The notes beneath the pieces are model-generated. The model worked only from the letters and a program-made list of their open reading frames with translations, was not told the DNA's origin and did not search any database. From Amphiscolops sp. MND2022 (Eukaryota), in assembly GCA_964187785.1 (NCBI GenBank), contig OZ076413.1, forward strand, positions 7,502,001 to 7,566,000: a stretch of 64,000 nt of DNA, in the 5' to 3' direction. The position numbers and the translations under genes are program-made. Below, one piece after another: positions 6,047 through 53,048 of this stretch; positions within the stretch are counted from its first letter, which is position 1, and the number at the start of each line of letters is the position of its first letter.

Positions 6047-8230
6047 TCATAAATTGTGGTTTGTGGATCGTTCTACATAGACACATAGAGTGAATCCAAA
6101 GATTCTAGGCATTGGAGGACCTTTTGACCAACTATCACTTGTGATGTCGTAAATATCCACATCAATACAATTATCGCCACCGATGACATAAATTTTGTCG
6201 TTCACCACTACAGACCCGCGTGGACTATTTGTATCTGGATGATTCAATTGCGCAATAGCTGTCCAGTTATCAATGGAAGGATTGTACTTTTCACAGAACC
6301 CGTCACGACCAAAAACATATATCTCTCCATTATACGTTGAGACAGTGTGCCAGTGATTTCCTTGATTCCTTGATTTGCAGAATCTCCAAAAATTCATTTT
6401 AGGATCAAAGACTTCGACGGTTGCAATGTTGTAATAACTACCAATAGCATAAATTTCATCATCCACACAAGCAGCTTGAAAGTGGTATCTCTCAGTATTC
6501 ATGGCAGGAAGTCTTAGCCAACTACCAATAGGTTCGCCGCTTCCATTACATTGCAACATTTCAACTGATTTCGGTATATTTTTCCCAACACCCCCCATTA
6601 CATAAATAGCATTTGTAGAAGTGACACTCGCTGAGAGTCCATGACGACCTTCCAGCATGCTTGGACCAGCGGTCCAAACTTTTGTTTGTGTATTGTAAAT
6701 TGAAACTTTAGACAAATTAGGATGCCCACCAATAAGGAAAACATTTACTCCGACAATAACTACACAAAAATAAATACCGTGATTTTCTCCGTGCCATTCT
6801 GTCCAAATTCCTTTGACTGGGTCGAACATGAGGTTTTCACCATCTTGACCAAAGACCAATAGTTTGGAGGTGAATCGATACCGGCTATTCGCGGTACAAT
6901 TTCCAGCAATTGCATCTTCCACCAACTTCCTGGAATCTAGATTGATCATTATGACGTGATCAGGGTCTGATTCTATTTCCCGCAACATTTCACTTGAAAC
7001 TTTGCCGAACCTTACGTGCTTCAAAAGTGAAATGCAATTCTTCTTCCTGAGCCAGAAATCGAAGTGTATCCATTCATTGACAACCGAAACAACATCATCT
7101 TCGCTTTCAACGTTCAGTTTGTCTGACTTAGTGAGATCCTCCAAAACACTCTGACTGATTCTTCGATAGAAACTAGACTTGCTTTCATTCACAACATCCA
7201 TAAAATTTTTCAATATATAATCGAACGCTTGATCGTACAACTGTTGATTTCCAACCTTTTTGGATTGTCTCAGTATGGAGATGCAGTTTTTGGTACTCAG
7301 TGCTTGATTGAGGTCCATTTCTTCTGAGTCATCATGAATCTCAAATTCCAAATCTGCGTAGGCAATGGCAGCGCAACTAGCGCAACGCTTTTCCATTAAA
7401 ATCATCACTTGCTCTGATAAAAGCTTGGCTCTGTCAAAATCATCCTTGCAACGAATCGACTCCTTTTTCAGCTCAGACACAAAATTTTCCAAAGCCACGA
7501 TATTGCTGTCAACAAAATCGAGACTTCCTGATTCGAACATCTTCGAGAGGTCCTCCATACGGGGTTTGATATCAGCGCATCCTTTCAGAATCCCGACATC
7601 TCGAAGTTTCTCTTGTGACAGATTGTCGATCAGCAAATCAATCTCAGAAATGCGGAGCTTCGAATTGAATTTCACTTGGTCCAGTTCAGAGTCTAATCTT
7701 TCCCAACATGGAAGTAAATGCTTATGCTTCGCCGTGCCAATCGGTTCTATAGCGTGCTCTGAATGATCACCGATTAGACATTTAATGCACAGTTCCTTCT
7801 CATCTTTGTAGCAATACAGCTGGATTTTTTCCCAATGAATGTCACAATTTTCCTTCTTCTTTGTAACTAGAAACGTTACCAACTTCTGCTCTTCGTCTTC
7901 AGAAATGCTATGGGTTCTGAAAAGTTTGATTAGGATATTAAACAGACATTTATCTTCCTCAACTTTTGATTTTTCCACTTCCTTTGCCAGCTTCAACTCA
8001 ACTGTTGAGGAAACTTCTTCACATGATAAAAGGGCCCCGATACAATCTCCCCAAGATTCCTGACCTGATTCGAAGTTAATTTTCAGGCCACGAAAAAGTT
8101 CGTCCAAAATAAAAGTAGAAATGTTTCGGTAACTTTCGTTTCTGTTGAGGCCATGGGATATAATGAGGTTGGCAATACAATTCGAGAAGGTGACATCTTC
8201 ATTCAACCGTGATTCCAAAATCTCGATCAT
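6047..8230 (-). CDS. Intronless 727-aa protein: B-box zinc finger, coiled coil, BACK domain, Kelch repeats
   Basis: CDIHWEKIQLYCYKDEKELCIKCLIGDHSEH (B-box type 2), then a heptad-rich region; TKNCISIL...YILKNF...LNVESEDDVVSVVNEWI...LLKHVRF (BACK); five to six Kelch repeats (VFLIGG, IYVMGG, IYAIG, IYVFG, IYVIGG with Y..W motifs). Confidence 0.9.
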   Translation of the reverse strand: MIEILESRLNEDVTFSNCIANLIISHGLNRNESYRNISTFILDELFRGLKINFESGQESWGDCIGALLSCEEVSSTVELKLAKEVEKSKVEEDKCLFNILIKLFRTHSISEDEEQKLVTFLVTKKKENCDIHWEKIQLYCYKDEKELCIKCLIGDHSEHAIEPIGTAKHKHLLPCWERLDSELDQVKFNSKLRISEIDLLIDNLSQEKLRDVGILKGCADIKPRMEDLSKMFESGSLDFVDSNIVALENFVSELKKESIRCKDDFDRAKLLSEQVMILMEKRCASCAAIAYADLEFEIHDDSEEMDLNQALSTKNCISILRQSKKVGNQQLYDQAFDYILKNFMDVVNESKSSFYRRISQSVLEDLTKSDKLNVESEDDVVSVVNEWIHFDFWLRKKNCISLLKHVRFGKVSSEMLREIESDPDHVIMINLDSRKLVEDAIAGNCTANSRYRFTSKLLVFGQDGENLMFDPVKGIWTEWHGENHGIYFCVVIVGVNVFLIGGHPNLSKVSIYNTQTKVWTAGPSMLEGRHGLSASVTSTNAIYVMGGVGKNIPKSVEMLQCNGSGEPIGSWLRLPAMNTERYHFQAACVDDEIYAIGSYYNIATVEVFDPKMNFWRFCKSRNQGNHWHTVSTYNGEIYVFGRDGFCEKYNPSIDNWTAIAQLNHPDTNSPRGSVVVNDKIYVIGGDNCIDVDIYDITSDSWSKGPPMPRIFGFTLCVYVERSTNHNL

Positions 8231-8519: not shown

Positions 8520-9000
8520 GAAAAATAGGCCCCTCCCCTCCGGGGCACATTACTATTTCTGCTTTAATCTTTCATTAATAACAGAATCATATATGGAATA
8601 CCAATACACTCCTGTTTAATCATTATTTAGCGCACAATTAATCACTGTAGCAGTTTATACTGTCTTTAAATCTCGGACTAAAACAAATATAACTACTAAG
8701 CGTAGACGGAGTTTCGCATTCGCATTTGAATGCAGGCGAAGCTCTCAACGAACGAATAATTAACACTCATTCGCTTCATCTCAATAACTCGAAAAGCATA
8801 CGAAAGCATAATTACCACTCGCTAGTTCCATCGCACTAGAATTGAAATGTCGTCGGCAGCTTGAGAAATTTAATTCCCACGCTTAGAGTCAGTGCCGAAC
8901 AAAATATCTGAAATATTCAGTATCATGCGAATAATTGTACTGAAAAAACGTAGACACCTTGAGATTTCAATAATATTCCTGCTATCGCAGAAATAATAAA
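8520..9000. repeat. Abundant dispersed repeat family R1 (AAAATAGGCCCCTCCGGGGC head; AACTACTAAGCGTAGACG...GCAGGCGAAGCTCTC core)
   Basis: Recognisable copies at about 8520-9000, 17063-17480, 23540-23650, 25850-27390 (split by a hAT), 37900-37980, 48440-48660, 50025-50545, 50960-51100 and 55780-56485. Confidence 0.8.
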
Positions 9001-9415
9001 TACGGAGCCGTTATTTTTGTTGTTTCTTGTCCTCTGATTTTTCAATCGAAATTGACCAAAAAGTGACCAATTTTTCAGCATGAGGTTTGAAGAGGGCCAA
9101 AAAAGCACAAAGTGTTCCTCTCAGTTAGACACCCCTTTGGATTTTTCGACGCTGTGCTTTCTCCGCATTTATTATTAGTCTTATTCATACAACAGTCCCT
9201 ACATGTTGTTATGATGGGGTTTTTCAGTTAAAACAACACTTTGGAACCCCAAACCGTTTTTTCGGCACTGTGCAACATTTTCAATTTCTAACAAAAGTTA
9301 CACCCGTGGTTTATATTTGCTTTCATTTAGGCAAAAGCTTTCTCTTTCTGTCGAGCCCAAAGGACACATTAAACAACCCCATACCCCCATAACTTTATTC
9401 TCGACACAGGGTAAC

Positions 9416-9643
9416 TGTTTACTAATTGAGCTTTGAATGAATCTCAGTTTTCTATTGAGTTGAAGAGACGAAGAGGGAAAGAATCAACTTTCTAATGAGA
9501 GTTTAACAAAAGTGTGAATGAAATTGAATGGAAAAGCAAATGTTTAGAGAAGTTGCACGTGAATGAATATGATTGGTTGAAACATTCAGATTGCTGTTAA
9601 AGTGACATGCGAGCTTCGAATTTTTCTTCTTTAGATCTCAACA
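9416..9643 (-). repeat. 3' LTR of the BEL/Pao element
   Basis: Direct repeat of 16530-16757, TGTTT...AACA. Confidence 0.95.
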
Positions 9644-9692
9644 TTCCGGCGGCCTTGAAGTATAATTTTACTTTAATCTTTCAGATCGAGTC

Positions 9693-10692
9693 ATGAGTGA
9701 ATATGATCATCTTACAGTTGAAGTTGACCGCGATTCGGAGAATCGGGAGAGGGAGGGGCGAGCACGTCGTCGGCCACCAATTGGGCAGTTTAGAGAGAGG
9801 CCATCGAGGAGGGTGAAAATACAGAGGCTGGATCCAGAGACGCTCGAGGGGTTCTGGGGTGATGTCGTCAGCGGCGCTGTCGGTCTGACTCCATTGTCAG
9901 CAAAGTCCCCAGAGCAGGTCCTGTCCAGTAGGAGGGAGGCAGCTGTGTTGGAGGGCCAATTCGTGGATTTGCCAGAGGATGTAAAGGTATATAAATAAAC
10001 TTCGAGAAAACTTCGATCTGGTTGAAGTAGTACTGCAAATACACTTGATTGAATTATGGGTTTATCTGAATGTTTTATTGTAGAAGGAGCTGTTGGAGAC
10101 CACATCGGTGGACTACGTGGCCACTTCGAAATTAACAGAGGGCACTGCGGCCAGAAATTGTCCGGAGCATCCCAGCAAGACCCGAGGGGACCGGCAATTG
10201 AAGGATGGTGAGGCAGTGAGTTCGTGGCCGGGGAGTGTCCAGCAGCCAATTCGAGTAATTCAAGTGGAGGGTTCATCTTTTCGTGCCTTCCACTATGATC
10301 TCTTGGACACAGCCGACTCCTTGCTATCATTAGTAAGGGGGAGAAAGCTATGGTTGCTGTGTCATCCTGGAAACACTGGGTCGCTGCTGGAGAGGTTTGC
10401 AGGGGCGAACGACTCTGAGGAGGGCTTTTCTGAAGCTGTGCGGTTTCTGCGGAATCTGTCGCCAGCGCAGAAGAAGCAAATTCTGTACTGTGTTCTAGAC
10501 AGCTCCAAGACACTGTACTTACCGTATGCCTGGGCCCACAGTGTCATAACAATTGTGCAGGAGGGATATGCTTGCTCGATGTGGTACATAGAGTTGCCAA
10601 CATCACAACAGGAGGTCTCGGAGGAGTGGAGGAAGGCGACTGGCAAGGGTCGTTGTGGTGGCAGGCGACAAGCAATGGCTGCTCCTCGATAG
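9693..10692 (+). CDS. Two-exon JmjC-domain protein (about 300 aa; exons 9693-9986 and 10084-10692) inside the BEL/Pao element, antisense to gag-pol
   Basis: Phase-0 GT-AG intron 9987-10083 (AAG|GTATAT...TTTTATTGTAG|AAG) joins the two ORFs in frame. Exon 2 has FRAFHYD (HxD), LVRGRKLWLLCHP (2OG-binding K) and TLYLPYAWAHSVIT (distal His). AATAAA at 10786-10791 followed by a T-rich tract. Confidence 0.85.
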
Positions 10693-10859
10693 GTAAGCAC
10701 TATATTTGGTAAATCTTTCAAATCATTGCATGTAAACTTGAAATAATGCAACAGATAATGTAATGAAAGTTTCAATACAAATGCAAATAAACTGTTTTTT
10801 GCTGCTTTTTCTTCAACAATGATCCGAAAGGCATGAGTACGAGGCGTGATGAGTATTAG

Positions 10860-11320
10860 GTAGGGTAATCAAGGCAATCTTTGCTCCATAACTCGTTATG
10901 GGGCACCGGGGTGCCACTTAGTATGAAGTCGAATGACAAACCTTTAGTCCAATTCAGGTAAGTTTTCCAAACATAAGAGATAACTAATAGGGCTAGAAGC
11001 GCAAAGATGCCAAAGTTGGAACCGGCAGGATACAGGCGAAGCTGTAGTACCAAAATTCTGCCCAAATTTTGAATTGGGGCATGGGGGTGCCACTTTGTTT
11101 AACAAAAAGTGGACCCTTTGCTAGGTAATTAATGATGAAATAGCTGAACTGCAGTTAAATAAAATGTCATCCAAACGCTTTCATAAGTAAATTCATTTGT
11201 ATGAATATCTAACTGAAGCGGTGGTAAGGTAATTCTGCCCGAAAATTCATTTGGGGCATAGGGGTGCCACTTTGTTTGTGGAAGAGTGGCCTCTTTCAAT
11301 GAAAGGTAAGTGAATTATGA
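10860..11320. repeat. Three degenerate tandem units of about 177 bp between JmjC and the end of pol
   Basis: GGGGCAnnGGGGTGCCACTT at 10900, 11076 and 11253; AATTCTGCCC upstream of units 2 and 3. Confidence 0.7.
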
Positions 11321-11322
11321 TG

Positions 11323-14300
11323 TCAGACACTAACGTATTTAACACCGGCAGTTGTCGCAGGGGTGGTAGCTGATTCAGAAATAATCGGCAGCTTTCGTAG
11401 TTTCACGACGGGTCGTATCAAAGTTGAGGAAGCGGTCTTGACTTTGCAGACTCGTGTGATGTCATCATTGCCAGAGTAAATCTCGATCACTCAGCCTGTT
11501 TTCCAGTGCAGTGGTGCTTCATTGTCTTCTGCTAGCAGCACCAAATCACCAACGTGGATTTCTGGGCCATTCACGAACCATTTTTTTCGTATTTGAAGCT
11601 CGGTCAAGTAATCTCTTTTCCAAGACTTCCAGAAATCTTCTTGAATCTTTTTGACTAGACGGAATCTTTGTACTGGATTGCTCTTTGAAGGTGCTCCTGA
11701 CGGCATTGACATTAGAGTGTCTCCAATGAGGAAATGGCCTGGAGTGAGGGCTAGTGGATCATTGGGATCATTTGAGAGAGGTGATATCGGCCTGGAGTTT
11801 AAGGCAGCTTCAACTTGATTGATGATTGTGAGAAATTCTTCATATGAAAAGATTTGTTTGCCAACCACTCTCCGCAAGTGTCGCTTCATGCTTTTCACTG
11901 CTGCTTCCCAAATTCCACCAAAATGTGGAGCTCGTGGTGGGATTGTGATCCATTCACAATTTCGTTGATTGACAAATGTTATCAATGAATTGTCACGATC
12001 AGTTTTGTCTAGTAGTACGTTGAGCTTGATCAGATCATTCCTTGCTCCCAAGAAGTTGGTTCCATTATCGCTAAGTATTTTAGCAGGCATTCCTCTGCGG
12101 GCAATGAAGCGATTCAGAGCCATTATGCAGTCATCTTTTGAGAGACTTGAGACTAACTCCATATGCACTGCTTTTGTACTCATACAAACGAAGATAGCTA
12201 TGTAGACTTTGTTCTCTGTTTCTCCATTCTTCACTAGGAAGTGTCCGGCAAAGTCAATTCCACAGTGTGTGAAAGGTCGTGAAGGGGTTACTCTCTCGGT
12301 TGGAAGATCGGCCATTAGTTGGACTGGAGGAGTTGTATTAAATCGAAAGCAAGTGATGCATTCTTTGATGAATTGATTGACTAATGGCTTGGCATTGACA
12401 ATCCAAAACTCTTGACGAATCAAATTGAGGGTTAGTTGCCCCCCTCCATGAAGCGACGCTTCATGAAAATGACGAATGATGAGTGGTACTAGTGATGAGT
12501 TCTTTGAGATTAATACTGGAAATTTCTTGTTTTCGCAATATGGGGATTGTCCGAGTCGACCTCCGACCCGAATAACATTGAATTCTTTGTCGAAGAACGG
12601 TGCGAGATTTTGTAGTGGGCTTTTTCGGTCCAATGGGCGATTTGATTGTAAAGTTATGTATTCCTTTGGAAGGTTCTGTAATTGGTCATGATGAAGTAGC
12701 AAGAATTTCGCCTTAGCAATGTTCACTGGATGAAGGGGTGAGTCGACTTTTGGAGTTTGCACGTGCTTTTTGAGCTTGTTCGCGAAGTGAATGACGTGTG
12801 CTGTCACGTGGAGTAATTTATTGTAATTACTGTATCGCTTGAAGTCGATGAAATTGGTATTTTCTTTGATTGCTGTGGTGGTTGTGAGGATTTGCGCATT
12901 GGTTCTCTGTTCGGGTACATCTCTGGTGACTTCAGGAAAGCTATTTGGCCATGATGTTTCAGCACCTGACAACCAATTAGGTCCTTGCCACCACAGTTCC
13001 GTCAGGACCAATTGTGAGGCAATGCATCCGCGTGAAGCTAGATCGGCAGGATTGTCTATGGAGGAGACGTGTTTCCAAGCTGATCGGGGAAGCACTGTTT
13101 GAATATGAGAAACTCTATTAGCAACAAAGGTTGACCATGTTTTTGGTAGTTGTGCTAACCATTGTAGCACGATGGTTGAGTCGGTCCATGCGTGAAGTGA
13201 GATGTCAGATTTGATGATTTCTAGAGTTGTCACCATTGTTGATGCAAGTTTGGCGGCTAATTCGGCACCACAAAGTTCGAGTCGTGGTAGTGAGACGGTT
13301 TTTACTGGAGCTACTCGTGTTTTCGATGAAAGTAGAGTGACGTTGACGTGTCCAATGTCATCTGTGATTCTGGAATATACGACTGCTGCGTACGCTTTCT
13401 CTGACGCATCAGAGAAGAAATGTAGTTGTAGGTTGGCAATTGTGTTCTTCATCACACATCGTGGGATCTTTAGTTGATTGAGTGCTGGAAGTTCTGAGCG
13501 CAGTTCTATCCAGAGCTGCTTGAGATCATCGGGAACCTCGTCGTCCCAATTGAGTCCTCTGACCCAAGTTTGTTGCATGAGAATTTTGAATTGAATGACT
13601 ATGGGTGCTAGCCAACCTAGTGGGTCAAATAGTTTTGACGTGGCTGAGAGCAAATTGCGCTTAGTTAGCTGTTGCGGTGGGTCGAATGAACTTTTGAAAA
13701 TAAATTCGTCAGAATTCGGTGTCCATTTGATTCCCAGAGCCTTCACTTTGAAATCTTCACTGAAGAGTTTCAATTCGTCGTTTTCAGTACGTAGATCCTT
13801 GTCGATGGACTTTAGGAGATCTTGACTGTTAGAAGACCACTTTCTGAGGGGGAACCCGTAGTGTAGGAGTTCTTGACGAAGATCTGTGAAGAGCTGGTGG
13901 GCTTCTTCAAGAGAGTTAGCTCCTCCAAGATAGTCATCAACAGAGAAGGAATGTTTGAGAGCTTTGGCCACATGAGGTTTTTGAGTTCGCTTTGCTATTT
14001 CGACGAGTGATCTTGTTGAGAGATGAGCTGCACATGATACACCGTAGATCACTCGCGTCAGACGAAAGTGCTTCAATGGTGATGATGATGTCTCTCTCCA
14101 CAAGAGTCTATGAAAATCTCTGTCTTCTTCTCTGAGTCCTACTTGTCGGTACATTTTTTCTACATCTCCTGTCAGTGCGATTTTGTAGAACCGAAATCGT
14201 GTGATGATGGCGAAGAGGTCATCTTGGACGACTGGTCCGACCATGAGAGCTTCATTGATCGAGATACCGTTGCTGGTTTTTGCTGACCCATCGAAGACTA

Positions 14301-16494
14301 CTCTCAACTTGGTTGTTGTTGAGTCTTCTTTAAAGACGCAGTGATGGGGTAAGTAGTAGCATTGATTCGCAGGACGTTGTATTTGGTGTTGCGGTACTTC
14401 CTCCATGTGATTCATATCAAGGAATTCTTGGATAAAGGCCTGATACCTTTTGCGTAGATCTGGTTTGGCATCAAGTCTTCTTTCCAGGTAGCTGAATCTC
14501 CTCTTGGCTTGCTCGAGACTGTCACCTAGCTCGACTGACTTCTTGAATGGAAGATTCACTACCAGGCGATCGTCGACGAATTTGGTTGTCTCTTCGTAGA
14601 GTTTTTCACATGCTGTTTCCTCGGGCGTCAAGTGTTTAGTTGTTGGTAATTCTTCCAATTCCCAAAATTTTTTGAGTTGGTCATCTAATGAGATGTGAAA
14701 GCTGTTGACTGGAATGGAACTCGATGATTGCTGCTGTGTACGGCCAGATACAACCCATCCAAACAGTGTGTTGCGAGCGAATAGATCTTTTGTGATAGTC
14801 CTTTTTTCTTGTCCGACGATTTGTTCGTAGACATCCGCTCCTAGTATCATGTCTACCTCACCAGGGCGTGTGAAGTTGGGATCTGCCCAAGTGATGTGCT
14901 TCATGCTAGTGAGGATTCGGTTGGTTGCTGGATAGCTTGGCAGCTGGTTTGCAACACGATCTAGTACAATAGCTGTTGTGGAAATTGTCTGATGATTTGG
15001 CGGAGTGAGTTGAATTGACACAATTGATCCTGACTTTGCTGTTAGATTTCCACCAATACCTGTGACACTGACACTTGCTTGTCGTGATTTCAACCCCAAG
15101 CGGTCGCGGCTCTTTTTTGTAATGCAGCTGATCTGGGAACCACTATCTAGGAGTGCACGAAGTGATGCGACCTTGCCAGAGTTTGTTTTGATTTGTACCA
15201 TTGCTGTTGGCAACAGAGTGAGGTCACATGAAGTGGCACCCCCATGCCCCAGAAATGATTGCGAGCTTGCTTGGTGGCTAGACGGCATCGTAGGGCGGTG
15301 GAGCAGCGTATTGTGCCGTTTTTTGCATGTGCGGCAAGTAGATTTGGACTTACACTCTTTAATAGAGTGCCCGGACCTCAGACAATTGAAGCACAAATTT
15401 TTTAATTTGACAAAGTCAACCTTTTCTTCTATTGAAAGGTCTTTGAACTGCTCACAGCTGTAAATGGCATGCGCTCCGCTGCATTTTGGACAGTCGAGAA
15501 TAGTATTTTCGCGCGAGTGATAACTTTGTAATTCTCTTTTACTTTTGTCTTGTTTGGTTGCTGCTGGTGAATTTGAGAAGTCGAGGGCTCGTGCTCTTTC
15601 TTCCAAAAACTTTGTCAACTCTTTCATTGTCTGTGGCTCGTCGCTTGTGTTGCTGAGTTCCCATTGTCTGCGTGTTTCAGGGTCTAACTTTTCTGAGATT
15701 ATATAAACCCAAAAATAGTCACATTCACTAGAGTCTTGACCCAGAGCTAACAATGCCCAAGAATTTTCAAGAAAAACAGTAGCTAACTTTCTCAATTGAT
15801 CTGATGACTCACGTTGTAGGGGCGGATACTTGATTATAGCTTCCAAGTGTGTGCGGATAATCATCCTCTTGTTTGCATAACGCTCTTTTAGAAGATCCTT
15901 GGCGACTTCATAGTTAGCGGTTGTTGCTGGTAAGTGAGCAAGTAATCTTGCAGGCTGATCTTTGAGTGATGTTTTCAAGTACTGGAGCTTTTGAATATCA
16001 CTCAGGGATTTGTTGGCATCCACAGTTTCCATGAAAAGATCAAAGAAAGGAAGCCATTCACTGTATTTTCCAGAGAAAGTTGGTAATGATAATTTAGGAA
16101 GCTTGAGGGCGTGTCTATACTCTGGTGCAGGTGGTGCTGTTGGTTCTGCAGCATCCTCAGTTGTTTCCGGCCTGGCGGCTGCGGCGTCGATGACGAATTG
16201 CAACGCATCGATGATTGTACAGATTTTTAGATCATTTTCATCTACTCGATTTCTTTCCTCTTGAAATGCATCTTCCTCTACTTCTGCTGCTATCATTGCT
16301 TCGTTAATTTGTTGATTCAACGTTTCTAGTTTTGTTTGTTGTTCCTTGCATTTTGTTAAACTGCATCGTAATGTAGCTAACTCTAGAGTTGTAAGTAACG
16401 ATGGATCTTTTTCCAAGATCTGCCTCGTTTTGTTTTCGACACAGGTAATTGTACCGATGTGTCCTGCCCTTGTTCGTCGTAATGCTTCTGTCAT
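11323..16494 (-). pseudogene. BEL/Pao gag-pol polyprotein (gag, protease, RT, RNase H, integrase) with a premature stop at 11491-11493
   Basis: LPKLSLPTFSG (DUF1759-type gag), three Cys/His knuckles, LLDSGSQ protease, YYLPHH and SVDD (RT), FSDASEKAY (RNase H), H..H..CxxC plus DFAG/DNG/E integrase. The frame continues past TGA as VIEIYSGNDDITRVCKVKT...RPVVKLRKLP to TGA at 11323. Confidence 0.95.
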
Positions 16495-16529
16495 GTTTCT
16501 GTTCCCGGGTCGATCGCGGCACCAATAAA

Positions 16530-16757
16530 TGTTTACTAATTGAGCTTTGAATGAATCTCAGTTTTCTATTGAGTTGAAGAGAGGAAGAGGGAAAGAATCA
16601 ACTTTCTAATGAGAGTTTAACAAAAGTGTGAATGAAATTGAATGGAAAAGCAAATGTTTAGAGAAGTTACACGTGAATGAATATGATTGGTTGAAACATT
16701 CAGATTGCTGTTAAAGTGACATGCGAGCTTCGAATTTTTCTTCTTTAGATCTGAACA
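16530..16757 (-). repeat. 5' LTR of the BEL/Pao element
   Basis: Direct repeat of 9416-9643; followed on the minus strand by a PBS and the gag ATG. Confidence 0.95.
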
Positions 16758-17505
16758 GTAACTTTTTCGAACATTTTCAATCCAAAAAAATTCTGGCTTT
16801 CAACTTGACGTTTTGTCAGAAAAATGTCCCATAAACTCCTCTGCGAAATAAACAGATCGGTAGAAAGAATACCAAGGTTTCAATCAAAAAATTTTGGTGT
16901 TTGAGAATATTAGGAACTTTAGCAGAAAGAAATAGCTCCTTAGCTGAGTTGGAGGACTTCAACGCTTTTCTACCCCTGATCGGAGCACGCCAATTTGGAT
17001 GATTCCCGGCTGGTATTGGCAAAAACACAATCGACAGGTTTTCGAGCAACAGAACTGTTTGGAAAAAAGGCCCCTACTGGGCACAGTATTATCTCTGCTT
17101 TCATCTTCAATAATAGAAGCATATCTTATTCATTTAAATAGGGCACAATTAATCACTCTACCAGTTTACACCGCCTTTAATTTTTCTCGGACTAAAGGAA
17201 ATATAACTACTAAGCGTAGACGAAATTTTCCATAAGCAATTGAATGCAGGCGAAGCTCTCGGCGAACGGATAATCAGTACTCGTTCCCTTCATCCCAATA
17301 ACTTGGCGTACGAATGCATAATTACCACTCGCTCGTTATATCGCACGAGAAACGAATTGTCGGCAGCTTGAGAAATTTAAATCTCACGCTTACAGTCACT
17401 GCCGAACAAAATATCTAAAATTTTTTTAGTATCACGACAAAAATTCTACTGAAAAAACCTGCTATCGCAGAAATAATAACACAGAGGCGAAGCGGTGCTT
17501 CGCAA

Positions 17506-17766
17506 CACATGACGAAGACATCGATTATCTAAATATGCGTATATATATTATTTTAATCGCATGCGTATATATTCAACAGTTCAACTTTGTTCAGTAACGT
17601 CCCTATGGCACAGTGGTCAACACTTATGCCGTGCAATCGGGAGGCTGCAGGTTCGAATCTTTCTGGGGTTTTGGGTTTTTTCTAAATGGCGCTCATTATG
17701 AAGTTGGCTATTGTGGAAAAAAAACTTACTTAGCTGGACTGCAATGCACATTGACTTCGTCATGTG
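17506..17766. mobile_element. CAC...GTG TIR element with an internal tRNA-like segment (second copy 50663-50922)
   Basis: TIR CACATGACGAAG / CTTCGTCATGTG with CAA on both flanks; A-box TGGCACAGTGG and B-box GGTTCGAATC at about 17599-17670; nearly identical copy at 50663-50922 including the left flank. Confidence 0.7.
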
Positions 17767-17779
17767 CAATAAGTCACAC

Positions 17780-40169: not shown

Positions 40170-43100
40170 AAAAGGGCAGTTTGCGTAATTTGACTACGGT
40201 TTTGTTGAAATTTCAAGTAGATGTTTTTACTTTCGCAACTCAGTTGATGTTTTTACCGGAGTAACTTGTCAATTCGTGCCATCTCAAAGTCGGTAGATAG
40301 TCTTCAGCGACTAAAGGCAGATCACCTGCAGCGATGCTATGTCCCGCGACAAGCCACTGTTTTCTTATTTGCAAAGTTACTAAGTATTCTCCAAACCATG
40401 CTTTTCAGAAGTCGTCTTTGATTCGTTTGAACAACTTATATCGTTGCAACAGAGTCAAATGGTCTGACTAGTGAAACGTGAGCTGGTGTTATTGGTTTCA
40501 GGTCCCTTTGGACCGTTGGAAATAGGTGAAAGGGGTCATGACATCAAGGTTGACTCGATTTTTACGACCAATGTGTTCAACTTGGTTGCAAATCTCGAAA
40601 AAAGAATGCGCAGTCCAAATCCTCTTAGATGGCGCTTCATGCTCTTTACAGCGGCTTCCAACATTCCTCCGGAATGAGGTGACCGCAGAAGTATGATTTA
40701 CCATTCGGTTCCTTGATCAGCCATGAAATTACTCTGATCTGTAAAGCTGGACTTTGATGATGTCGTTCCTGGTCCCGATGAAAATGCCCCCATTGCCACT
40801 CACAATTTTATTGGGCGCGAAATGAACATCTTCATAGCTGAAATGAAGGCTTCCTCCGGCGAAACTTCGACTAATTCAATATGGACTGCTTTTATTACAA
40901 AACAACGAAAATATCGAAATAGATATTCTGATTTGAACTTCGTGAGGATTGGACATGCTACATCAAGACTACGGGTCTGAAAAAGTATCGATGCAGTGAT
41001 TCGTTCAGCTGGACGGTCTGCCATCAACTGACTTGGTACCTGTTTTTCAAATAGACCGCATGTGACGCACTGTTTGATCTTCTTCGCTAAATGTCTTCCA
41101 GTTGGAACCCAAAACTACTCTCTGCTTGTATTCAAGGTTAGCTGCACACCCGCCATGAAGGAAAGCCGGTTCATGAAAATACTGCACGTTCAAAATTTCG
41201 AGTTGAAAAATATTTTTTTTCGAGCGAGAAAAGAAAATTCTTCGTTTCTCTGAAGTTTCCTGGTGATAATCTGTCTCCAACACGTGGCGTTTTAGTTTCG
41301 TCATCGAAAAAGGGTGAAAGACTCAGCAGTTTGTTTTTAGGCAATTCCGAGACATGTTGAAAAATGGTGATTGCGTCCCTGACCGAGTCTCATTGGCGCC
41401 GTTTAACCATTTCAATCTCTACCGGGACACGATATTGAGCCGTAAAGTACTTCGAATTCAATTGCATCAAGAATTTTACAGCTATCTTCACGGTGGGAAC
41501 ACGATAAAACTTCCTGACCATCGAATACCGACATCAATCCAACAGATTTTGAAATACCGATTGCACAGTGAGAATGGTCCGTGCCACAAAGTCTTGATTG
41601 AGACTCTCTATGGTCGTTCTGCGAAAAGAATAATCAGCAGGGTTGCTTCCATATTTGACACGACGCAATTGCGATTTCGGAAGACCCGGTTGACTTTCGG
41701 ACATTCTGTTCGCGAAAAAGTAGTCCAAGTTCTCGGTAATTGCGCAAGCCATTGTAAAACGATCGTGGTCGGTCCGGTCCAGGCGGTGCTTTTACGTTGG
41801 TATGTTTGGTGAGTTGGGAAATACCACGAGGTTCCCTGAGTAATTTGATAGGTGTGACTCTGTTCTTTCCTACTACAAAATTGACAGCAATGAATCCCAT
41901 GGAATCGACGAATCTGGAATGCAAAACAGCTGTATATGCCAATTCGGATGCATTTGTGAACAAACTGAACAGAATTGATTTCACAGAGTTGAGACTTAGG
42001 ATACATGTTGGGAGATAGAGAACGAGCAATGATGAAGATTAGATTGCTATCATCCCTCCAACAAAGGGTCGAGCAACTGTTCATCCCAATCTACGCTCCT
42101 TGTCCAATGCTTTGTAGCAGTATGTTGAACTTGATGGCAACAGGACTGTTCGAGGTGTCCAAGGGGATCGAAGTTTTGCTGCATCTGACGGGTTGTCTTT
42201 TTGCGACTGATTCATAACATAGAGAAAATCTAGAAATGATCAGCAATTGGTTTCCAGGATTCCAAAAATCTAACATTGGTAGTCTTGGTCCATGGATTTC
42301 TTCTGAACTTTTCCCGAAAGGAATGAATTCAATTCAGTGTGACTTGAGACCCATTTTCTCAGTTCGAATCCAAAATTACTCAAATCCTAACAACGGAGCC
42401 GAATTTGTTATTTTGCGGCTGCTACTGAATCCGTTCTTGACAGATAATCGTCCTCGTAGTAGTAATTTATTGTCATTGAAATTTCTTCGACAGAAAATGG
42501 ATTACTGACCGCCATCAAGGCTCGTACTGAATTGCTGAAGTGATGCTGTAGATGCCTCTCGTCATACGGAGTTGCTGAAAGTGTTGATTTGGATCCTTAC
42601 GCCACAAAATCGGTGAAAATCTCTTCCTGTTTTGTCCAAAACTATAAGTCTAAACATTCTGGCAAGGTCCGCTGCTAATGCCACTCTATGTAAACAAAAT
42701 CTCACCAGCAGTGAAAAAAAGGTCTTGTTGAACGGTGGGACCAATCATTAGTGATTAAATGAGGGACGAATCGATGTCTGATTTTGGGAACCATCAAAAA
42801 CAAGTCGCAATTTGGTTGTGCTTGTTTCACCTTTCTGAACGCAATGGTGTGGTAGGAAGTTGATTTTTTCGTTAGGTTTGTGAATATCATCAACGGGTAC
42901 TTGTTCAGTGTGTCTCAATTCGGCGAAGTCATGAATTACAGTGTAAGAGCCTTCTTCCAGTTGCGAATCAAATTATACGCGTTTTTTCTACGACAGAAAT
43001 GGTCTCTTCACTTGCAAATAGGTGTCACCCGATGGTTTGACATCACATTTGAACTACAAAAAAAACGATTGTTTTCAACTCTGGTTGTGAACTGGAAGTG

Positions 43101-44530
43101 TTCACATGCTATCTCGTCCGGTCATTGTGTCTTAACTGGGGGTATCTCAAAATATCTCAAAAAGTTCCTAAAATTTCTCAAAAACGAAGTGTTGTCAATG
43201 CAAACTGAATGTTATCTCTGATTGCGTCTGTTTTGAATCAGTATGCTCTCCAGATGTACTCCAACTGAAAACAGTATTTCTGAAGTTAATTCCACTTTCT
43301 TCAGTGAAATTGCCTGCCGTCCAGAACAAGTTCTTCGAAGACATCTGAATCAACAATCATCTCAATTCTGACAGGTTTATTGAAAGTTTAGTATGCAAAT
43401 TTGACCAAACGAAATTAGGAAATTGTTAGAATGCTGAGTTCTAATGAAGGAAGGAAATCTGAGTGTTGGGAGTATGTAGGCTGTGACGTCTATCACCATT
43501 TTCGAGTTGTGATCTGAAAAACTACTGATCCAGAATTGTAGGATTTGGTTACATTACTAATTCCGTTGTTTGTGAATAACTGCTTGAGACGTTCAAATTC
43601 CATTTATTACAGAGTGTCTTCTGTGACTAAACTGAGTTGCGACCCACTGTCTAGCAACACACAACACAAGTTTACGGGAAATCATTGGAGAATCATTGCT
43701 GTGGGAAGGAGTCCAACTGTGAAATGGATTCCAGAAAGACCTGCCACTATAGATCCAGTTGACTTCAAGCTGACTCTTGTTGATGAAACATGCAAGAGAT
43801 TTGTGTCGCCGCTTGCATGTTCGACAGGATAATTTTGAATTGCAATCTTTCGTTGCGTGGCCTAAAATCAAGCATTTGGAACACACTTTAGCTGTAAAGA
43901 CGATGTTTTCCGCTCTTGAATTAGGTTAGATTCTTGAACTTGTCACAGCTGAAGATATGATTTTTTAAACAAGCAGTACATCTTTCAGTTGATACCTTGT
44001 AGTTATGTGAGACATGATTGGAATCTCGAGACTTTCTGTGTTTTCACGATTTGAATGTGTTCAAACTGCTTTGATGAGTCCTGGATCCGGAAACTTCTAA
44101 TGCTTGAACCCTCCAGTTGAATAATTTTCCAAGGTTAGTAATAATTATTCCAAGGTTAGCAAGTATTTGCTTGGATAGTAAAGATAATTTTTTTTCATTG
44201 GATGTCAAGCTTTTCCGATATGCCCACCACAAACACGCAGGAAACGGTATCTACCTGAGAGATGGTATCTACCCGAGAGATGAATTGCCATCAAATTGTC
44301 TTCGAAAGCTACAATTAGCATCCTAAGCTCGCGTGCAGATTCTTTACTTGAGCTGAAAAATAGCTGATCAGTCTTGACAGTCAACCATGGATTATCGTAT
44401 TTGCCGGTAAGGCTGTTGAGGGCAATTTGATTATTCGAATTTGATAGTGGAAGATGAGAGATCAATTGTGATGCCTCTTCAGTTAGGGTGGATTTCAGGC
44501 AGTTGAAGTTCTGAATATCTGGCAGACTGG
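40170..44530 (-). mobile_element. Heavily decayed, 5'-truncated BEL/Pao retrotransposon
   Basis: Fragments CLKSTLTEEASQLISHLP...KYDNP, CSKCLILGHATKDC...CRTCKRRH, TIVLQWLAQLPRTWTTF, WEAAVKSMKRH and terminal VVKLRKLP, with many frameshifts; no LTR pair found. Confidence 0.85.
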
Positions 44531-44759
44531 CGCGGGACTAAAAACTTGGGTCTGAAAGTGTGGACAAAAAACGTAGGTTGAAAAAATGGTCGTTGTTCAA
44601 TTGATGAAGTTTGGAGGAAAGTGAATATAACTAAATTTTGGGGAGAAAAAAGGACAGCAGTACAGATTGAAATTTTTCGAAAAATGTTCTGTTTTTTTTT
44701 GGAAACAGATGTAAAGCAACAAAAAATACTCCAAGTTGGACAAATAGGCACCACATAAA

Positions 44760-47453: not shown

Positions 47454-50400
47454 GTCTTGACAAATCCTTTAATCCTATTAGAGAGAGAAAGCGAAAAAGT
47501 CCCCTTACAAATTTATCAAGTCCCTGGTTGAGGAAAAAATATGAATCATGCAAGACATCGGAAAAAATCTTGCAAGATTCTGGCAGAAACTACGAATCTT
47601 GTAAAAATCAGACAGAAAATTTATTTTTGCAAAGATTTTCAACAAGGTGTATTTATTTTATCCACGATCAAACAAGAATTGAACATTACTTATAGTGTCT
47701 TTACAAGAGTGGTGTGAAGAAACAATGCGACTTAGAAAGTTTGATGCGCTTTGAAAAAACCTTGATTAACTAAGTAAAGAATAGTATCTCAGACAAAACG
47801 AACATATCTTGAGAAAAATCATTTTCAGGGCTTTCAGCTGATTCATTTATTTACCTAAAACGATGCCTCAAACCAGCAAAAAAAGCGTCGACAAAAAATA
47901 AATCTGAACTTGCAAAAACTTTGTTTGTCAAATTTCCAAAATAACCAACGTACATTAATCAACTGTTTCACTAATTATCATTCGATACAATGACCGAGGA
48001 GTTCGATCATTCTATACAATGACAGAGTTGGAAGCGGGGCTAAATATTCAGGACCGGCCCGTTCAACGCTTTTGAAACTCCTACAAACAAACAGAAAATG
48101 AATTTAATTCTGACCCTTTGTGATCTACACCTATCAAAACACAAGCCCCATATTTAGAGCAATAAAAGTCCCGGTCGGCCGAAAAAGTCAACCAAGTAAT
48201 GTAAAGAATTGATTCGAGCTTCAAACCAGACCCTTTCAAACTACTGTACATTTCATACAGGCCAAAATCGGCGCTAAAAATTTTTCTACAGCTGCAAGAA
48301 AAAACATATGACACTGCTTTTATCATTTCTGCATAATTTTGGGAGAAAAAATTCATTTCAAAATGAGGAAATAAATCCACCAGATTGTTGTCAAAATTTT
48401 TAAGTTTCCGAATGCGCAAACTTAGTCAATTCTTCTACTGAAAGCATTCAAATGTTCATGTTTGTAACAAGCTTGAGCTTTTGCACTCGAACATTTGAAT
48501 GAAGGCGAAGCTCTCAGCCATACATTAATCAGCGAGCACTCATACCATTCATGTCAAAAAAAAAGTTTTCTTCTTGGTTTCGCCTTGTACGTATCACCGT
48601 AATTCCGTCCAAAAACTCCCAATATCGTTCCTCACAACCGCCGTACCTCACAGCTGCCGAATTCGCAAACTCAAAGACAAAACTTCTACAGTTTTCACAA
48701 AGGCAAAGTTTTTTCCCGTTTTTCTATTTTTGGCCCATCTCTGAGACATCAAGTCAAAATTCTGTGGAAAAGCGTGCAATGCTATGTAATGTCGCCTCAG
48801 CCTGAAAATACCATTCAAGAGTTTTACGGTCAACTGGTGCTTCATAAGTTTGCAGAAACTAACTGGTACGAATTCGACCTTATCGTCCATTTAGGGTTAA
48901 ATATTATTTAAACGGTCAACACAGCTGGTAGTTATTTCGAATTGATATTTACTCTAGTAAACAAGAGGTACTTCAACTTCTTAGTAAAGTGACGATTGAG
49001 AGCTGGTCGCGTTTGTCATTTCGTAACATGGAATATGATGAATTCCTCCATGCAAATTGATTTTCACATACGATTCAGCATCAACTCTGAAAAACTTGCG
49101 ATATCTACTTGCAATTCTGATGAAAAATGATTGCAGTCGGTTTTCCTACATGGACGATTCGCACGAATTAGAGCGAAATCTGCAAAATCGCTGATTGCAA
49201 GACCTAATTAATTATTCCCAATAGCCTCCAAACACAACTTTTTGAGATGAAAACCCAGGTTTTCAATCTTTGCGAATCTGTAAAGATCTGCAGGATTTTT
49301 CTGCAGGGTTCTGCAAAGATCGTTGCACTGAATCTTGAAGATCCATACAGATCTGCAAGATCTTTACAGAAGTGTGCAGATTTTCTTTAAAGATTTTTGC
49401 AGAAATGGGGTTTTCTGCAGCGTTTACGTTTTCATTCTGGATTCATTGTGATAGCCTGTACATTTTCTTTGTGTTCGCTTTTCTCAACTCAAGTGAAAAA
49501 AAATGAGGAGGAATACTGTTCTTTGGTGAAATATTCAAAACAAAATCAATTTAAATGCAAAGAAAAACCTAAAAACCAAAAATAAATTATTGCTTGTTGA
49601 AATTTAGGACGTTAAGATACACTATGGCACCAAACTAATGACAGCTGATATAAAAGACGAACTCATTGAAAGCGCACTTTTACTTAGGACATGCACTAAA
49701 CAAAAACGTCTAAGGTGCAAATGTTCCTCAAATTTCGATCAGAAATACAACCGCATATTGTTGCATATTTGTAAGTATCAGCCTTCTACTTCTTTGACCC
49801 GAACACTAGAACAAGAGGACATGTGACGTATTTCCACCAAAATGAGTTTTGAAATTATCCAGATTTTCAGTTCGCTGAGTCGTGAACAAAATCACTATAG
49901 TCTGTGGTCTTTACTCGAATGACAAACAATTTATATGGTCACTCTTTCAGCTATTGTGGGCTTCGGAAAAATTCACACAGAACTCCATTAATTTTCTTAT
50001 TTCACGCATTTTCTTATCCCAAAAAATAGGCCCCTCCGGGGCTCAGTACTAATTCTGCTTTAATCTTTCATTAATAATAGAATCATATCTGGAATACCAA
50101 TACACTCTTGTTTAATCATTATTTAGCGCACAATTAATCACTGTACAAGTTTACACCGCCTTTAATTCTACTTGGACTAAAGAAACTATAACTACTAAGC
50201 GTAGACGAAGTTTCGCATTCGCATTTGAATGCAGGCGAAGCTCTCGGCGAACGAATAATTAACACTCATTCGCTTCATCTCAATAACTCGGGGCAACGAA
50301 AGCACAATTACGAACATTCGCTTGCTTCATCTCAATGACGTCAGCATACGAATGGATAATTACCACTCGCTCGTTCCATCGCACTAGAATTGAATTGTCG

Positions 50401-53048
50401 TCGGCAGCTTGAGAAATTCAATTCTCATGTTTATAGTCACTGCCGAACAAAATATCTGAATTATTCAGTAATCGTTCGAAGAAATTTACTGAAAAAAAGT
50501 AGACATCTTGAGATTTCAATAATATTCCTGCTATGGCAGAAATAAACAAATTTCCAGACTTCCAGAGGCGAAAGCCCCCGTTTAATGGAGGCCTCAAAAA
50601 TAATCAAATAGAAACTGAGTCGTGTCTGAAAGATAACACAGAGGCGAAGCGGTGCTTCGCAACACATGACGAAGACATCGATTACTTTAATATGCGTATA
50701 TATATAATTTTAATCGCATGCGTATATATTGAACAGTTCAACTTTGTTCAATACCGTCCCTATGGCACAGTGGTCAACACTTATGCCGTGCAATCGGGAG
50801 GCTGCAGGTTCGAATCTCTCTGGGGTTTTGGCTTTTTTCTAAAAGGCGCTCATTATGAAGTTGACTATAGTGGAAAAAAACTTACGTAGCTGGACTGCAA
50901 TGCACATTGACATCGTCATGTGCAAAAAAAAGGTTCATTAAAGATTAAAAGAAGAATATTTTCTTTTAATCCCCACGCTTACAGTCACTGCCAAACAAAA
51001 TATCTGAACTATTCAGTATCGTACGAAAAATGTACTGAAAAGAAGTAGACAGTTTGAGGTTACAATAATATTCCTGCTAAAGCAGAAATAATAATAAAAC
51101 AAGCCGGTACCGGCCCAAAGTCAGCGCCCCGCTGAAGTTTCTTGAATATGCAAAGGACACTGTTTTCAAACTTTTATCACTTTCTCAGTGCCGAGAAATA
51201 CACCAAACGATACGCGACTCGGAAACCACATTTTCCCCAACTGCAAACAAAATATCAATGTTTCGAAAAAAAATCGATTTTTCACGGAAAATGTCAAACT
51301 GCCGAAAAAGTAACTTTCAGCTCAAAAAACTACCTTTTCTCAAGCCTAAATCCGCCATGAAAGCGGGAGGTTACTCTTTGACCAAACGAAAGTTTAGGAA
51401 GAAAGCGCACTGAGCCAAAAAAACTTCAACAAAGTATGATAAAGTATTGAGAAAAAAAAGAAAAACAATGGGGTCTGACAATACTAGAGAAAATCTAATA
51501 AAAAGACAATAACAAGCCGAGAACGGCCAAAGTCGACGCCATATCTAAGGCTCAAAATTGAAAAGGGGGGACCCTTCGGGCTTTGTGAAACTCCAGCTGG
51601 TTGTAAAAAATGAAAAAAAAATTGAAGGGGGGACCCTTTGGGGACATGAAAAAATTTCCCAAAAAATTTTTTGAAATGAGATTTTTGAACAGTGCCGAAA
51701 ACTGTAAAAGGAGGGACCCTTTGCGATTTTTTGACATCCATTGTGTTGCAAAATATCGAAACAAATGAAGGGGCAGCCCTTTGGTGCAATCCAAAAAGTT
51801 TCAAAAAGTCTCATAGTGTAGAAAAAAAGTGGGGCTATGGGAGGATCCTTAGTGTGTTTTCGAGGTTCTGGACGTCTGTTTTGTTTTTTCTTTTCGTTTT
51901 GGACGCGCTTCTGAGGTTGGAGTTGTTGAGGTTTGAAGTTGTTGAGGTTTGACGTTGTTGAACAAATGAACAAACAAGACGGGAACTTCTCAAGTCGGCG
52001 CTATATCTAAGGCTCAAAAAGCGCAAAACATTTTTTTTGGAAAAAAACTTGAAATTTTCGAAAAAAAATTTCTTTCGGAAAATGTCGCACAGTGCCGAAA
52101 AATGTAAAAGGGGGACCCTTTTGATTTATAAACACGCATTCTGTAGCAAAATAACAAAAAGACTCAAAGGGGGGACCCTTTGGGGACATAGTGCCGAAAA
52201 AAAATCGAAAGGGGGGACCCTTTAGTCCCGTCCGGGCTTGTAGGTAACGTTTAAAAAGTAAATGAATGCGCTCCCCGTTTGCCTTTACCGGTCCAGTAGT
52301 TTAGTACTGTATTTAGTAGTTGAACGTTAATTTTAACGTTCGTCGCTTCGGGTCTGTCTTAAATAAAAAAAAAAGAAAAAAAACGAGTGACTGTAATAGT
52401 CGGGCTCTTTTCTTAAGAAAAGCGCCGACTAAAAAGTGGACCTTTCGTGTCTAAAAAAACTACCCACTGTAAGAGTCGGGCACATTTTCTACTGAAATGC
52501 GCCGACTAAAAACAGAGCTTTGTTTACGAAAAACATCTTTCAAGATTCAAGCGATTAGACTACTGACAGGTTTCGATGATTACTAAAATAGACCGAATCA
52601 TTTCAGGCATCTACTAATAGTATTAAGAGAAAGACTTTTCTGAAAGATTGAACTTTTCTACCTAGAAAACAAAATCTATCCAAACTATCAAAATAAACAT
52701 TGCATACAAACTGTAGTGTATGTAAATAAAATGGCTTCAAGAAAACATTCTATACAAAATTTCATGACAATTTCCAATTATAAAAAGTGTATCCCACATT
52801 TTATAAAGATGCAAACTTCTTAAAACTTTTCAAGTAAATCAAAAATGATATCAGATATAGACATATAAATTCTTGGCTAACTTGTAGGACTAATCTCTGC
52901 TCTCTTTCATAAAATTCTCGAAGTTCTATTTCTATAGAGTAGCAGCTGAACTATAAACTGCAGCATTGAGGAATTAGACTGGTTTCCGTCTTATAACCGC
53001 GAGCCCTAAATGATGATCACCAGTTACCGATTAGATTCCAAGAAAGGA

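Follow-up and report, generated by a model that had tools for sequence, protein, structure and literature searches.

Introduction

A Ty3/Gypsy lineage of long terminal repeat (LTR) retrotransposons of the orchid Phalaenopsis encodes an active 2-oxoglutarate dioxygenase of the AlkB type in an additional open reading frame (ORF), which has been proposed to counter host surveillance through the removal of N6-methyladenosine (m6A) from RNA (PMC9289625). Dioxygenases of the TET/JBP type are encoded by fungal DNA transposons (Kyakuja-Dileera-Zisupton and others; PMC12730594). Antisense ORFs situated between pol and the 3' LTR are known from plants, namely gene23 of maize Grande and those of rice RIRE2 and Silene Retand, which have neither recognisable homologues nor a known function, and an antisense promoter in the 3' LTR is mentioned for deltaretroviruses (PMC7264820). 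In bdelloid rotifers, LTR retrotransposons contain diverse captured ORF3s that are shared among retroelement types, with no JmjC/cupin protein and no antisense gene reported (PMC5408684). Here we describe a BEL/Pao LTR retrotransposon with an antisense, intron-containing gene for a JmjC-type oxygenase. The element lies in a 64,000-nucleotide stretch of the genome of Amphiscolops sp. MND2022 (assembly GCA_964187785.1, contig OZ076413.1, positions 7,502,001 to 7,566,000 of the forward strand), which is referred to as the window and from whose first letter all positions are counted.

The window element resembles those of orchids in being an LTR retrotransposon lineage with a fixed extra ORF for an Fe(II)/2-oxoglutarate dioxygenase, but it belongs to BEL/Pao instead of Ty3/Gypsy, resides in an animal instead of a plant and encodes a JmjC instead of an AlkB protein; moreover, whereas the orchid elements measure ~25 kb, it is compact (7.3 kb), and its gene is antisense and spliced. 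With the fungal transposons it shares the presence, in a mobile element, of a 2-oxoglutarate oxygenase potentially able to remove a mark of epigenetic silencing, although a retrotransposon is involved here and DNA transposons there, and the target of TET/JBP enzymes is methylcytosine in DNA, that of JmjC enzymes protein (or tRNA). Like the plant antisense ORFs, the accessory gene is read inward from the 3' end and opposite to gag-pol; transcription of its own is known for the plant ORFs and is presumed for the window element, which differs from them in the recognisable enzyme fold, the conserved catalytic residues and intron, and the animal host. The similarity to the rotifer elements lies in the capture, by LTR elements of animals, of accessory ORFs that encode enzymes and are shared across element classes (compare the Maverick-associated relatives described below), yet the rotifer ORF3s are of the DEDDy, GDSL, coiled-coil, transmembrane or env type and belong to Ty3/Gypsy-like lineages. 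In line with an earlier remark that no JmjC cargo was known from BEL/Pao elements, a literature search of incomplete coverage, which provides absence of evidence only, returned no report of JmjC or Cupin_8 in BEL/Pao elements, transposon-encoded proteins, retrotransposons or Polinton/Maverick elements. That mobile elements may include an accessory gene for a 2-oxoglutarate oxygenase is thus known; new are the enzyme family, the element superfamily, the animal host and the antisense spliced gene.

An intact BEL/Pao element with an antisense gene

The whole oxygenase gene sits in the interval from the pol stop (11491) to the 3' LTR (9643) of an element of 7,342 bp (9416-16757) in which no gene is broken (Table 1). 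Because gag-pol is read on the minus strand, the LTR at the low-coordinate end is the 3' LTR and the oxygenase gene, on the plus strand, runs antisense to the element. This gene starts 49 nt from the inner edge of this LTR and converges on pol, with 800 nt between the two stop codons. The minus orientation of the element is further supported by the TGG-starting tract that resembles a primer-binding site; a tRNA scan and an Rfam scan of the window gave no match. Gag-pol contains, according to Pfam, DUF1759 (gag), a zinc knuckle, Asp_protease, RVT_1, Peptidase_A17, Integrase_H2C2, rve and DUF5641, with scores of 175.7 bits for Peptidase_A17 ('Pao retrotransposon peptidase'), 109.5 for DUF1759 and 59.4 for DUF5641. 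By these domains, its LTRs, the short target-site duplication and the tract resembling a primer-binding site, the element is a member of BEL/Pao (Belpaoviridae). The LTR pair differs at 3 of 228 positions, and the element is a recently inserted, structurally intact BEL/Pao retrotransposon.

A first-pass annotation of this DNA, made from the sequence alone, had described a cassette between pol and the 3' LTR of a BEL/Pao element with near-identical LTRs and a perfect GTAAC duplication. All of these features were recovered at the same positions, and the BEL/Pao assignment is borne out by the Peptidase_A17, DUF1759 and DUF5641 matches. Its placement of the gene and its splice model stand as well, to which must be added what it had omitted, namely that gag-pol occupies the minus strand and that the gene is therefore antisense.

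Table 1. Features of the BEL/Pao element and its oxygenase gene (positions in the window)
Feature	Position	Strand	Basis or remark
Target-site duplication GTAAC, left	9411..9415		Same 5-mer as 16758-16762; abuts the LTR
3' LTR, 228 bp, TG..CA ends	9416..9643	-	225/228 identical to 16530-16757, ungapped
Leader, 49 nt, from LTR edge to oxygenase ATG	9644..9692	+	Common to several loci
JmjC-type oxygenase gene, 300 amino acids once spliced, no stops or frameshifts	9693..10692	+	Antisense to gag-pol
Exon 1, 98 codons	9693..9986	+	Homologous exon 1 in L002, L003, L004 and L007
Intron, 97 nt, GT..AG, phase 0	9987..10083	+	Same position in relatives
Exon 2, 202 codons and stop, JmjC core	10084..10692	+	Cupin_8 match; residues conserved in relatives
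AATAAA, candidate polyadenylation signal, 94 nt past the stop	10786..10791	+	Also in L001; putative function
Spacer between convergent stops, three copies of hairpin-forming GGGGTGCCACTT	10856..11300		Copies at 10908, 11084 and 11261
Gag-pol, single unbroken ORF, 1,667 amino acids	16494..11491	-	ORF and Pfam matches
Primer-binding-site-like tract, begins TGG, 5 nt inside the 5' LTR	16501..16524	-	Read from sequence
5' LTR, 228 bp, TG..CA ends	16530..16757	-	225/228 identical to 9416-9643
Target-site duplication GTAAC, right	16758..16762		Same 5-mer as 9411-9415

Exon structure and flanking signals of the oxygenase gene

The splice model was judged from relatives, that is, from loci sharing the intron position and from homologues without an intron. 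The intron position is shared by L001 (97 nt), L002 (104 nt), L004 (108 nt) and L007 (64 nt), all with GT..AG borders, and by L003 (111 nt), where the borders are GC..AG, while the intron sequences of different families cannot be aligned. In the intronless relatives P0015, P0022 and P0033 (283, 293 and 294 amino acids, respectively) the whole protein is encoded in one ORF. The joined exons of the window align with P0015 in one segment across the junction (residues 7-274 to 1-263, 34% identity, E 5e-37) and with P0022 in a single alignment that also spans the junction (E 7e-29). The shared intron position and the intronless relatives thus support a predicted spliced product of 300 amino acids. 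Moreover, since GT..AG is kept at one position while the intron sequence drifts, splicing of the antisense RNA would itself be under selection.

The leader that precedes the ATG consists of a G/C-rich tract next to the LTR, which is the complement of the polypurine tract, followed by TTGAAG and then by TTTCAGAT at 9679-9686. This last motif is found 6-15 nt upstream of the ATG in seven loci (the window, L001, L002, L003, L004, L007 and L017), among which the leader is conserved although the LTRs are unalignable, and it occurs only three times on the plus strand of the window. It resembles a 3' splice acceptor, through which the mRNA may acquire its 5' end, either by spliced-leader trans-splicing or by cis-splicing to an LTR exon; alternatively, its conservation may reflect a constraint on the opposite strand, beside the polypurine tract. 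Downstream of the gene, the copies of GGGGTGCCACTT in the spacer are 176-177 nt apart, and a fourth copy lies inside gag-pol (15231-15242, minus strand). The four matches in the window compare with 0.16 expected, and the motif is shared with L001 only.

A putative stand-alone JmjC-fold protein

Pfam was run on exon 1, on exon 2 and on full-length relatives, while the joined 300-residue product was used for alignments and for the selection analysis. Exon 2 (10084-10689) matches Cupin_8 (PF13621) with 30.5 bits and an E-value of 4.5e-7, the curated cut-off being 27.4, and gives no match to the JmjC model PF02373. Among 26 relatives, Cupin_8 is matched by 11, JmjC_2 by eight and JmjC PF02373 by seven (best E 1.1e-4). 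The active-site motifs of the window gene are H-Y-D at 10291-10299, G-R-K with its lysine at 10345-10347 and W-A-H with its histidine at 10537-10539, so that, in exon 2 numbering, the metal triad consists of H70-Y71-D72 and H152 and the 2-oxoglutarate lysine is K88. In JmjC enzymes this lysine binds the C5 carboxylate of 2-oxoglutarate. HMMER alignments place the window residues on the H-x-D, the lysine after G-E and the distal histidine of PHF8. Across 40 relatives, in which mean column identity is 21%, the catalytic columns are kept almost throughout (first histidine 35/40, aspartate 38/40, lysine 39/40, distal histidine 36/40).

The fold was approached by structure prediction and by searches with a family profile. 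Modelled alone from an 11-sequence alignment, exon 2 of the window yields an unusable model, with a predicted local distance difference test score (pLDDT) of 40.6. In contrast, the AlphaFold2 model of full-length P0015, built from a 40-sequence alignment, has a pLDDT of 87.6 and a predicted template-modelling score (pTM) of 0.85, is confident from about residue 41 onwards, and places H159, D161, K177 and H239 on strands, in blocks with a pLDDT of at least 94. Exon 2 does not fold on its own because the folded region, as seen in P0015, includes the second half of exon 1; the N-terminus encoded by this exon is Arg-rich. A Foldseek search of the PDB with the P0015 model gives 463 matches at E<=0.001, of which the best 50 are all JmjC enzymes and include JMJD5, ceKDM7A, FIH, KDM7A, PHF2, KDM2A, PHF8 and NO66 (E ~1e-7, TM-scores 0.4-0.53). 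The matches from a structure search of BFVD were confined to JmjC/cupin proteins of giant viruses and the AlkB domains of RNA viruses that infect plants, none closer than the cellular enzymes. Compared with PDB sequences, the family profile matches PHF8 (2.5e-7), KDM7A (2.7e-6), PHF2 (1.4e-4) and C. elegans KDM7A (5.6e-4), in alignments to PHF8/KDM7A-type sequences that span H-x-D to the distal histidine, and after a gap JMJD6 and JMJD7 follow at an E-value of 0.08.

An N-terminal PHD finger, which recognises H3K4me3 and brings the JmjC domain into position, is characteristic of the KDM7 enzymes, and they demethylate H3K9me2, H3K27me2 or H4K20me1. The element-encoded family resembles this subfamily (PHF8, KDM7A, PHF2 and C. 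elegans KDM7A) in that the JmjC fold, the metal triad and the 2-oxoglutarate lysine align, but it differs in the lack of a PHD finger, in size (~300 versus >900 amino acids) and in an identity of only ~10-13% in structural alignments. Neither a PHD nor any other reader domain was found by Pfam when the two exons and the full-length relatives were searched. With JMJD5/KDM8 and FIH, which have the top Foldseek E-values, it shares the stand-alone JmjC architecture and a similar size, in contrast to a TM-score of only 0.4-0.5 and the lack of a significant match at the sequence level. Judged by its sequence, the catalytic core appears nearest to the KDM7/PHF clade, to which the protein does not itself belong, and the combined evidence supports a product that would be a divergent stand-alone JmjC-fold protein with an intact active-site signature. 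Arg/Lys and Asp/Glu each occur 13 times in the N-terminal 60 residues, while the last 30 residues have seven Arg/Lys versus three Asp/Glu; these Arg/Lys-rich ends might direct the oxygenase to the nucleus.

The first-pass annotation had recognised the iron triad (H-Y-D ... W-A-H) and the 2-oxoglutarate lysine, both of which are present and conserved in relatives. The likeness that it drew to KDM2/KDM7(PHF8) and JMJD4/JMJD6 holds in part: PHF8, KDM7A and PHF2 are the best profile matches, while JMJD6 is marginal and JMJD4 never appeared among the matches. The domain search and structure prediction that it put forward had similarly mixed outcomes, as Cupin_8 exceeds its cut-off for exon 2 and PF02373 does not match, and as the full-length relative P0015 is predicted to adopt the JmjC fold whereas exon 2 of the window alone is modelled poorly.

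Mobility and relatives of the cassette

A second copy of the element, L001 (ENA ERZ25074608), is 99.3% identical to the window element over 7.3 kb and occupies a different site, with identical LTRs (100%), a 5-bp duplication of its own (GATGA) and the same oxygenase cassette. The cassette has therefore transposed together with the element, as had been claimed from the window alone, and the recurrence of the layout in diverged families agrees with this. The gag-pol of L001 is interrupted by a premature stop and by a frameshifting indel (one of each), whereas its oxygenase gene is unbroken.

More distant copies were compared by the length-weighted identity of gag-pol to the window and by the identity of oxygenase exon 2 to that of the window (Table 2). 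In L001, L002, L004 (two copies), L005, L009, L010 and L017 the oxygenase gene converges on a Pao integrase/DUF5641 region on the opposite strand, and this layout lies inside an LTR pair wherever such a pair could be found. Across these loci, the gene is thus an antisense ORF between pol and the 3' LTR (aORF-3R type). The rank order of divergence from the window is nearly the same for gag-pol and oxygenase, which is the pattern that would be expected from one ancient acquisition followed by co-inheritance.

Table 2. Divergence of related loci from the window element
Locus	LTR pair	Oxygenase identity	Gag-pol identity
L001	100% identical	99%	~99%
L002	93% identical	61%	~59%
L004 (two copies)	no flanking pair detected	48%	~56%
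L007	no pair detected	52%	~55%
L009	94% identical	39%	~46%
L010	no flanking pair detected	26%	~40%

Searched against 1.84 billion representative proteins, the family profile gives 38 matches at E<0.001, none of which is named and among which there is no canonical cellular JmjC protein and no cellular KDM7. None of the cellular homologues lies near enough for a reliable alignment. Relatives of the oxygenase come from one or two metagenome-style assemblies of long reads and from the marine metagenomes of Tara Oceans; the contigs of P0015 (1.8-2.7 kb) are too short to show any surrounding element. A scan of IMG/VR for relatives gave no match, and one candidate from a scan of JGI metagenomes (L021) was set aside as irrelevant, being a remote cupin (33% over 90 residues) on a bacterial contig of 67% GC.

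Some loci show other arrangements. An oxygenase copy close to the L002 family (L003:9593-10606) has a GC intron donor instead of GT and no gag-pol detectable within 10 kb, and is probably the remnant of a deleted element. In L007:2-5267, L017:6-2646 and L004:10001-20553, the gag of one copy is followed, after an LTR-sized gap, by the oxygenase gene of the next copy, and L004 contains two tandem element copies, each with its own oxygenase gene. Such arrangements represent either tandem arrays that share an LTR or assembly paths through collapsed LTRs.

The distant relatives P0033 and P0051 (293-294 amino acids, single ORF, ~25% identical) are found outside BEL/Pao, in L008:10001-20885 and L018:10001-20882 (ENA ERZ26859043). 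They are located 2.5-3 kb from a gene for a protein-primed DNA_pol_B_2 polymerase with Endonuclease_7 and C2H2/BED fingers, and also near a gene for a cysteine protease of the adenovirus/Ulp1 type. L008 and L018 match each other at 98.8% identity throughout their 20.9 kb, and nine members, on different contigs, make up the 90% cluster. A protein-primed polymerase B together with an adenovirus/Ulp1-type protease is a hallmark of Maverick/Polinton elements. Because P0033 and P0051 stand beside genes of this type, the oxygenase family may be shared by unrelated classes of mobile elements.

Selection on the oxygenase

Purifying selection, on which a functional reading of the cassette had earlier been made to depend, is supported by sequence comparisons of the three pairs of loci whose synonymous sites are unsaturated. 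The ratio of the proportions of non-synonymous and synonymous differences (pN/pS) is 0.32 for exon 2 of L002 and L003 (binomial P 2e-6), 0.45 for exon 2 of L005 and L007 (P 0.002) and 0.31 for exon 1 of L004 and L007 (P 4e-8). In deep pairs, the synonymous divergence (dS) is saturated and the non-synonymous divergence (dN) is 0.37-0.6. Exon 1 of the older copies L002 and L003 no longer reads through, which is the decay expected after insertion. The outcome that the first-pass annotation had set against its own reading, a cassette present in this copy only and decaying neutrally, is contradicted by L001 and the diverged families and by the constraint on the gene. The oxygenase gene is a long-standing, selected component of an element clade and not a passenger.

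Genomic surroundings of the element

The DNA that flanks the element on both sides (8535-9000 and 17126-17770) belongs to another repeat family, of which copies that are 82-95% identical lie at 50031-50925 and 56003-56488 and in L004; the element was therefore inserted into or beside older repeats. At 1.2 kb from its 3' LTR, on the minus strand (6047-8230), there is a host-like single-exon ORF of 727 amino acids with a B-box, BACK and Kelch repeats. A second BEL/Pao-like gag-pol at ~40279-44645, also on the minus strand, is degraded, its fragments being 25-55% identical to the first, and no oxygenase match was detected in it.

A proposed antisense unit and its possible substrates

In the proposed mechanism, the oxygenase gene would be transcribed inward from the 3'-LTR end as an independent antisense unit. 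In the sense genomic RNA the intron would remain in place and be copied by reverse transcription, since the antisense orientation prevents its splicing from this RNA and thereby lets it survive in the element. Reporter cassettes with an antisense intron rely on the same logic, their intron staying unspliced in genomic RNA. The antisense pre-mRNA would be spliced, with a possible second splice at the conserved TTTCAG (9679-9684) just before the ATG, and polyadenylated ~100 nt past the stop codon. The antisense orientation would thus be central both to the retention of the intron and to the expression of the gene. The protein would then act in trans, as an active oxygenase, to the benefit of the element family, which fits the intact oxygenase gene that L001 keeps beside its broken gag-pol. 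Leaving the substrate aside, we hold it highly probable that the anatomy, cargo and selection described above go together with an active oxygenase that serves the element.

Several points weigh against this reading and against any particular substrate. The Cupin_8 match of the window gene is barely over threshold and covers the C-terminal half of the model only. The good structural model is that of P0015, which is colinear with the window protein and 34% identical to it, so that the double-stranded beta-helix of the window protein is a prediction by homology. The oxygenase genes of the window and L001 differ at two positions, both non-synonymous, a number too small to bear interpretation. For the antisense transcript, along with its promoter and splicing, the prediction comes from sequence conservation in the DNA, and some JmjC proteins work without catalysis. 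Finally, the substrate is a guess, because there is no reader domain and the structure search does not separate demethylases from hydroxylases.

With this in mind, the preferred substrate class, tentatively proposed, is a methylated histone lysine, with erasure of repressive marks as by KDM7/PHF8 and hence a counter-silencing function. Somewhat more doubtful, and the strongest of the alternatives, is that the product is a JmjC-only protein hydroxylase like JMJD5, FIH, JMJD7 or JMJD4 and not a histone demethylase; it would then hydroxylate a host protein of translation, the ribosome, splicing or defence, or the Gag or integrase of the element itself. The remaining probability falls to other substrates. 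A stand-alone JmjC protein of 300 residues with no PHD, Tudor or other reader domain is what such a hydroxylase would look like, since small JmjC-only proteins are mostly hydroxylases, and among the best 50 of the 463 structural matches JMJD5 leads by E-value and FIH is also high. However, the sequence profile is clearly nearest to PHF8, KDM7A, PHF2 and ceKDM7A (E 2.5e-7 to 5.6e-4, against only 0.08 for JMJD6 and JMJD7), and the best query-normalised TM-scores belong to PHF2, KDM7A and KDM2A (0.50-0.53). Combined into one hypothesis, that of a JmjC family specific to mobile elements (an animal BEL/Pao clade and perhaps Maverick/Polinton-like elements), whose gene, antisense and interrupted by an intron, is expressed at the 3' LTR and which erases repressive histone methylation of the host at and around the elements in a KDM7-like manner, histone demethylation by the oxygenase is a possibility that we regard as speculative.

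Much less probable is that the antisense RNA is what matters and the ORF is incidental, the RNA acting by pairing with genomic RNA or through small-RNA pathways, or that the protein is a non-catalytic scaffold. Regulatory antisense transcripts are known for several retroelements (PMC7264820), and any transcript of the oxygenase gene must overlap the sense genomic RNA towards the 3' end of the latter; a role of the RNA is also compatible with one of the protein. An RNA-only role would not, however, maintain the constraint seen at the protein level, namely the excess of synonymous over non-synonymous change, the ligands kept in 35-39 of 40 relatives and a fold preserved at 21% mean column identity. 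It is very improbable that the gene is a neutral passenger, that is, a fragment of a host gene transduced once and now decaying, even though LTR retrotransposons occasionally transduce host sequences (PMC7264820): it is found in every family of the clade that was examined, down to 26% protein identity and in the same position and orientation, its pN/pS is 0.3-0.45 with P down to 4e-8, its catalytic residues and splice sites are conserved, and no cellular parent gene is detectable among the 1.84 billion representatives. There is hardly any prospect that the real gene is instead the 268-residue sense-strand ORF at 9707-10513 (minus), with the oxygenase frame as its shadow, since this ORF, part of a stop-free minus-strand stretch of 278 residues over exon 1, intron and exon 2 in the window and L001, has no Pfam match, is not conserved as an open stretch in other families (100-186 residues) and is probably itself a shadow of the plus-strand frame, to which the domain, structure and homologue support belongs.

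Concluding remarks

Whatever the substrate of the JmjC oxygenase, its gene means that 2-oxoglutarate oxygenases of three classes, JmjC besides AlkB and TET/JBP, now figure among the accessory genes of mobile elements in eukaryotes. Among antisense accessory genes of LTR retrotransposons, it is also the first whose product has a recognisable enzymatic fold, and it is a natural example of an intron that is retained in a retroelement through antisense orientation. The oxygenase is thus a candidate for a transposon-encoded accessory enzyme that modifies chromatin or proteins.

Animal genomes silence retrotransposons largely by means of repressive histone methylation guided by small RNAs, and to our knowledge countermeasures to chromatin silencing that are encoded by the elements themselves are essentially undescribed in animals. 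The element family described here has kept an apparently active JmjC oxygenase while its gag-pol diverged to ~40% identity, and the nearest solved relatives of this enzyme, which are of the KDM7/PHF8 type, remove H3K9me2 and H3K27me2. Whether retrotransposons fight chromatin silencing by enzymatic means thereby becomes a question that can be examined in this host. If the oxygenase does erase such marks, it would rank as the first histone demethylase encoded by a transposon and, in animals, as the equivalent of the anti-silencing factors of plant transposons.

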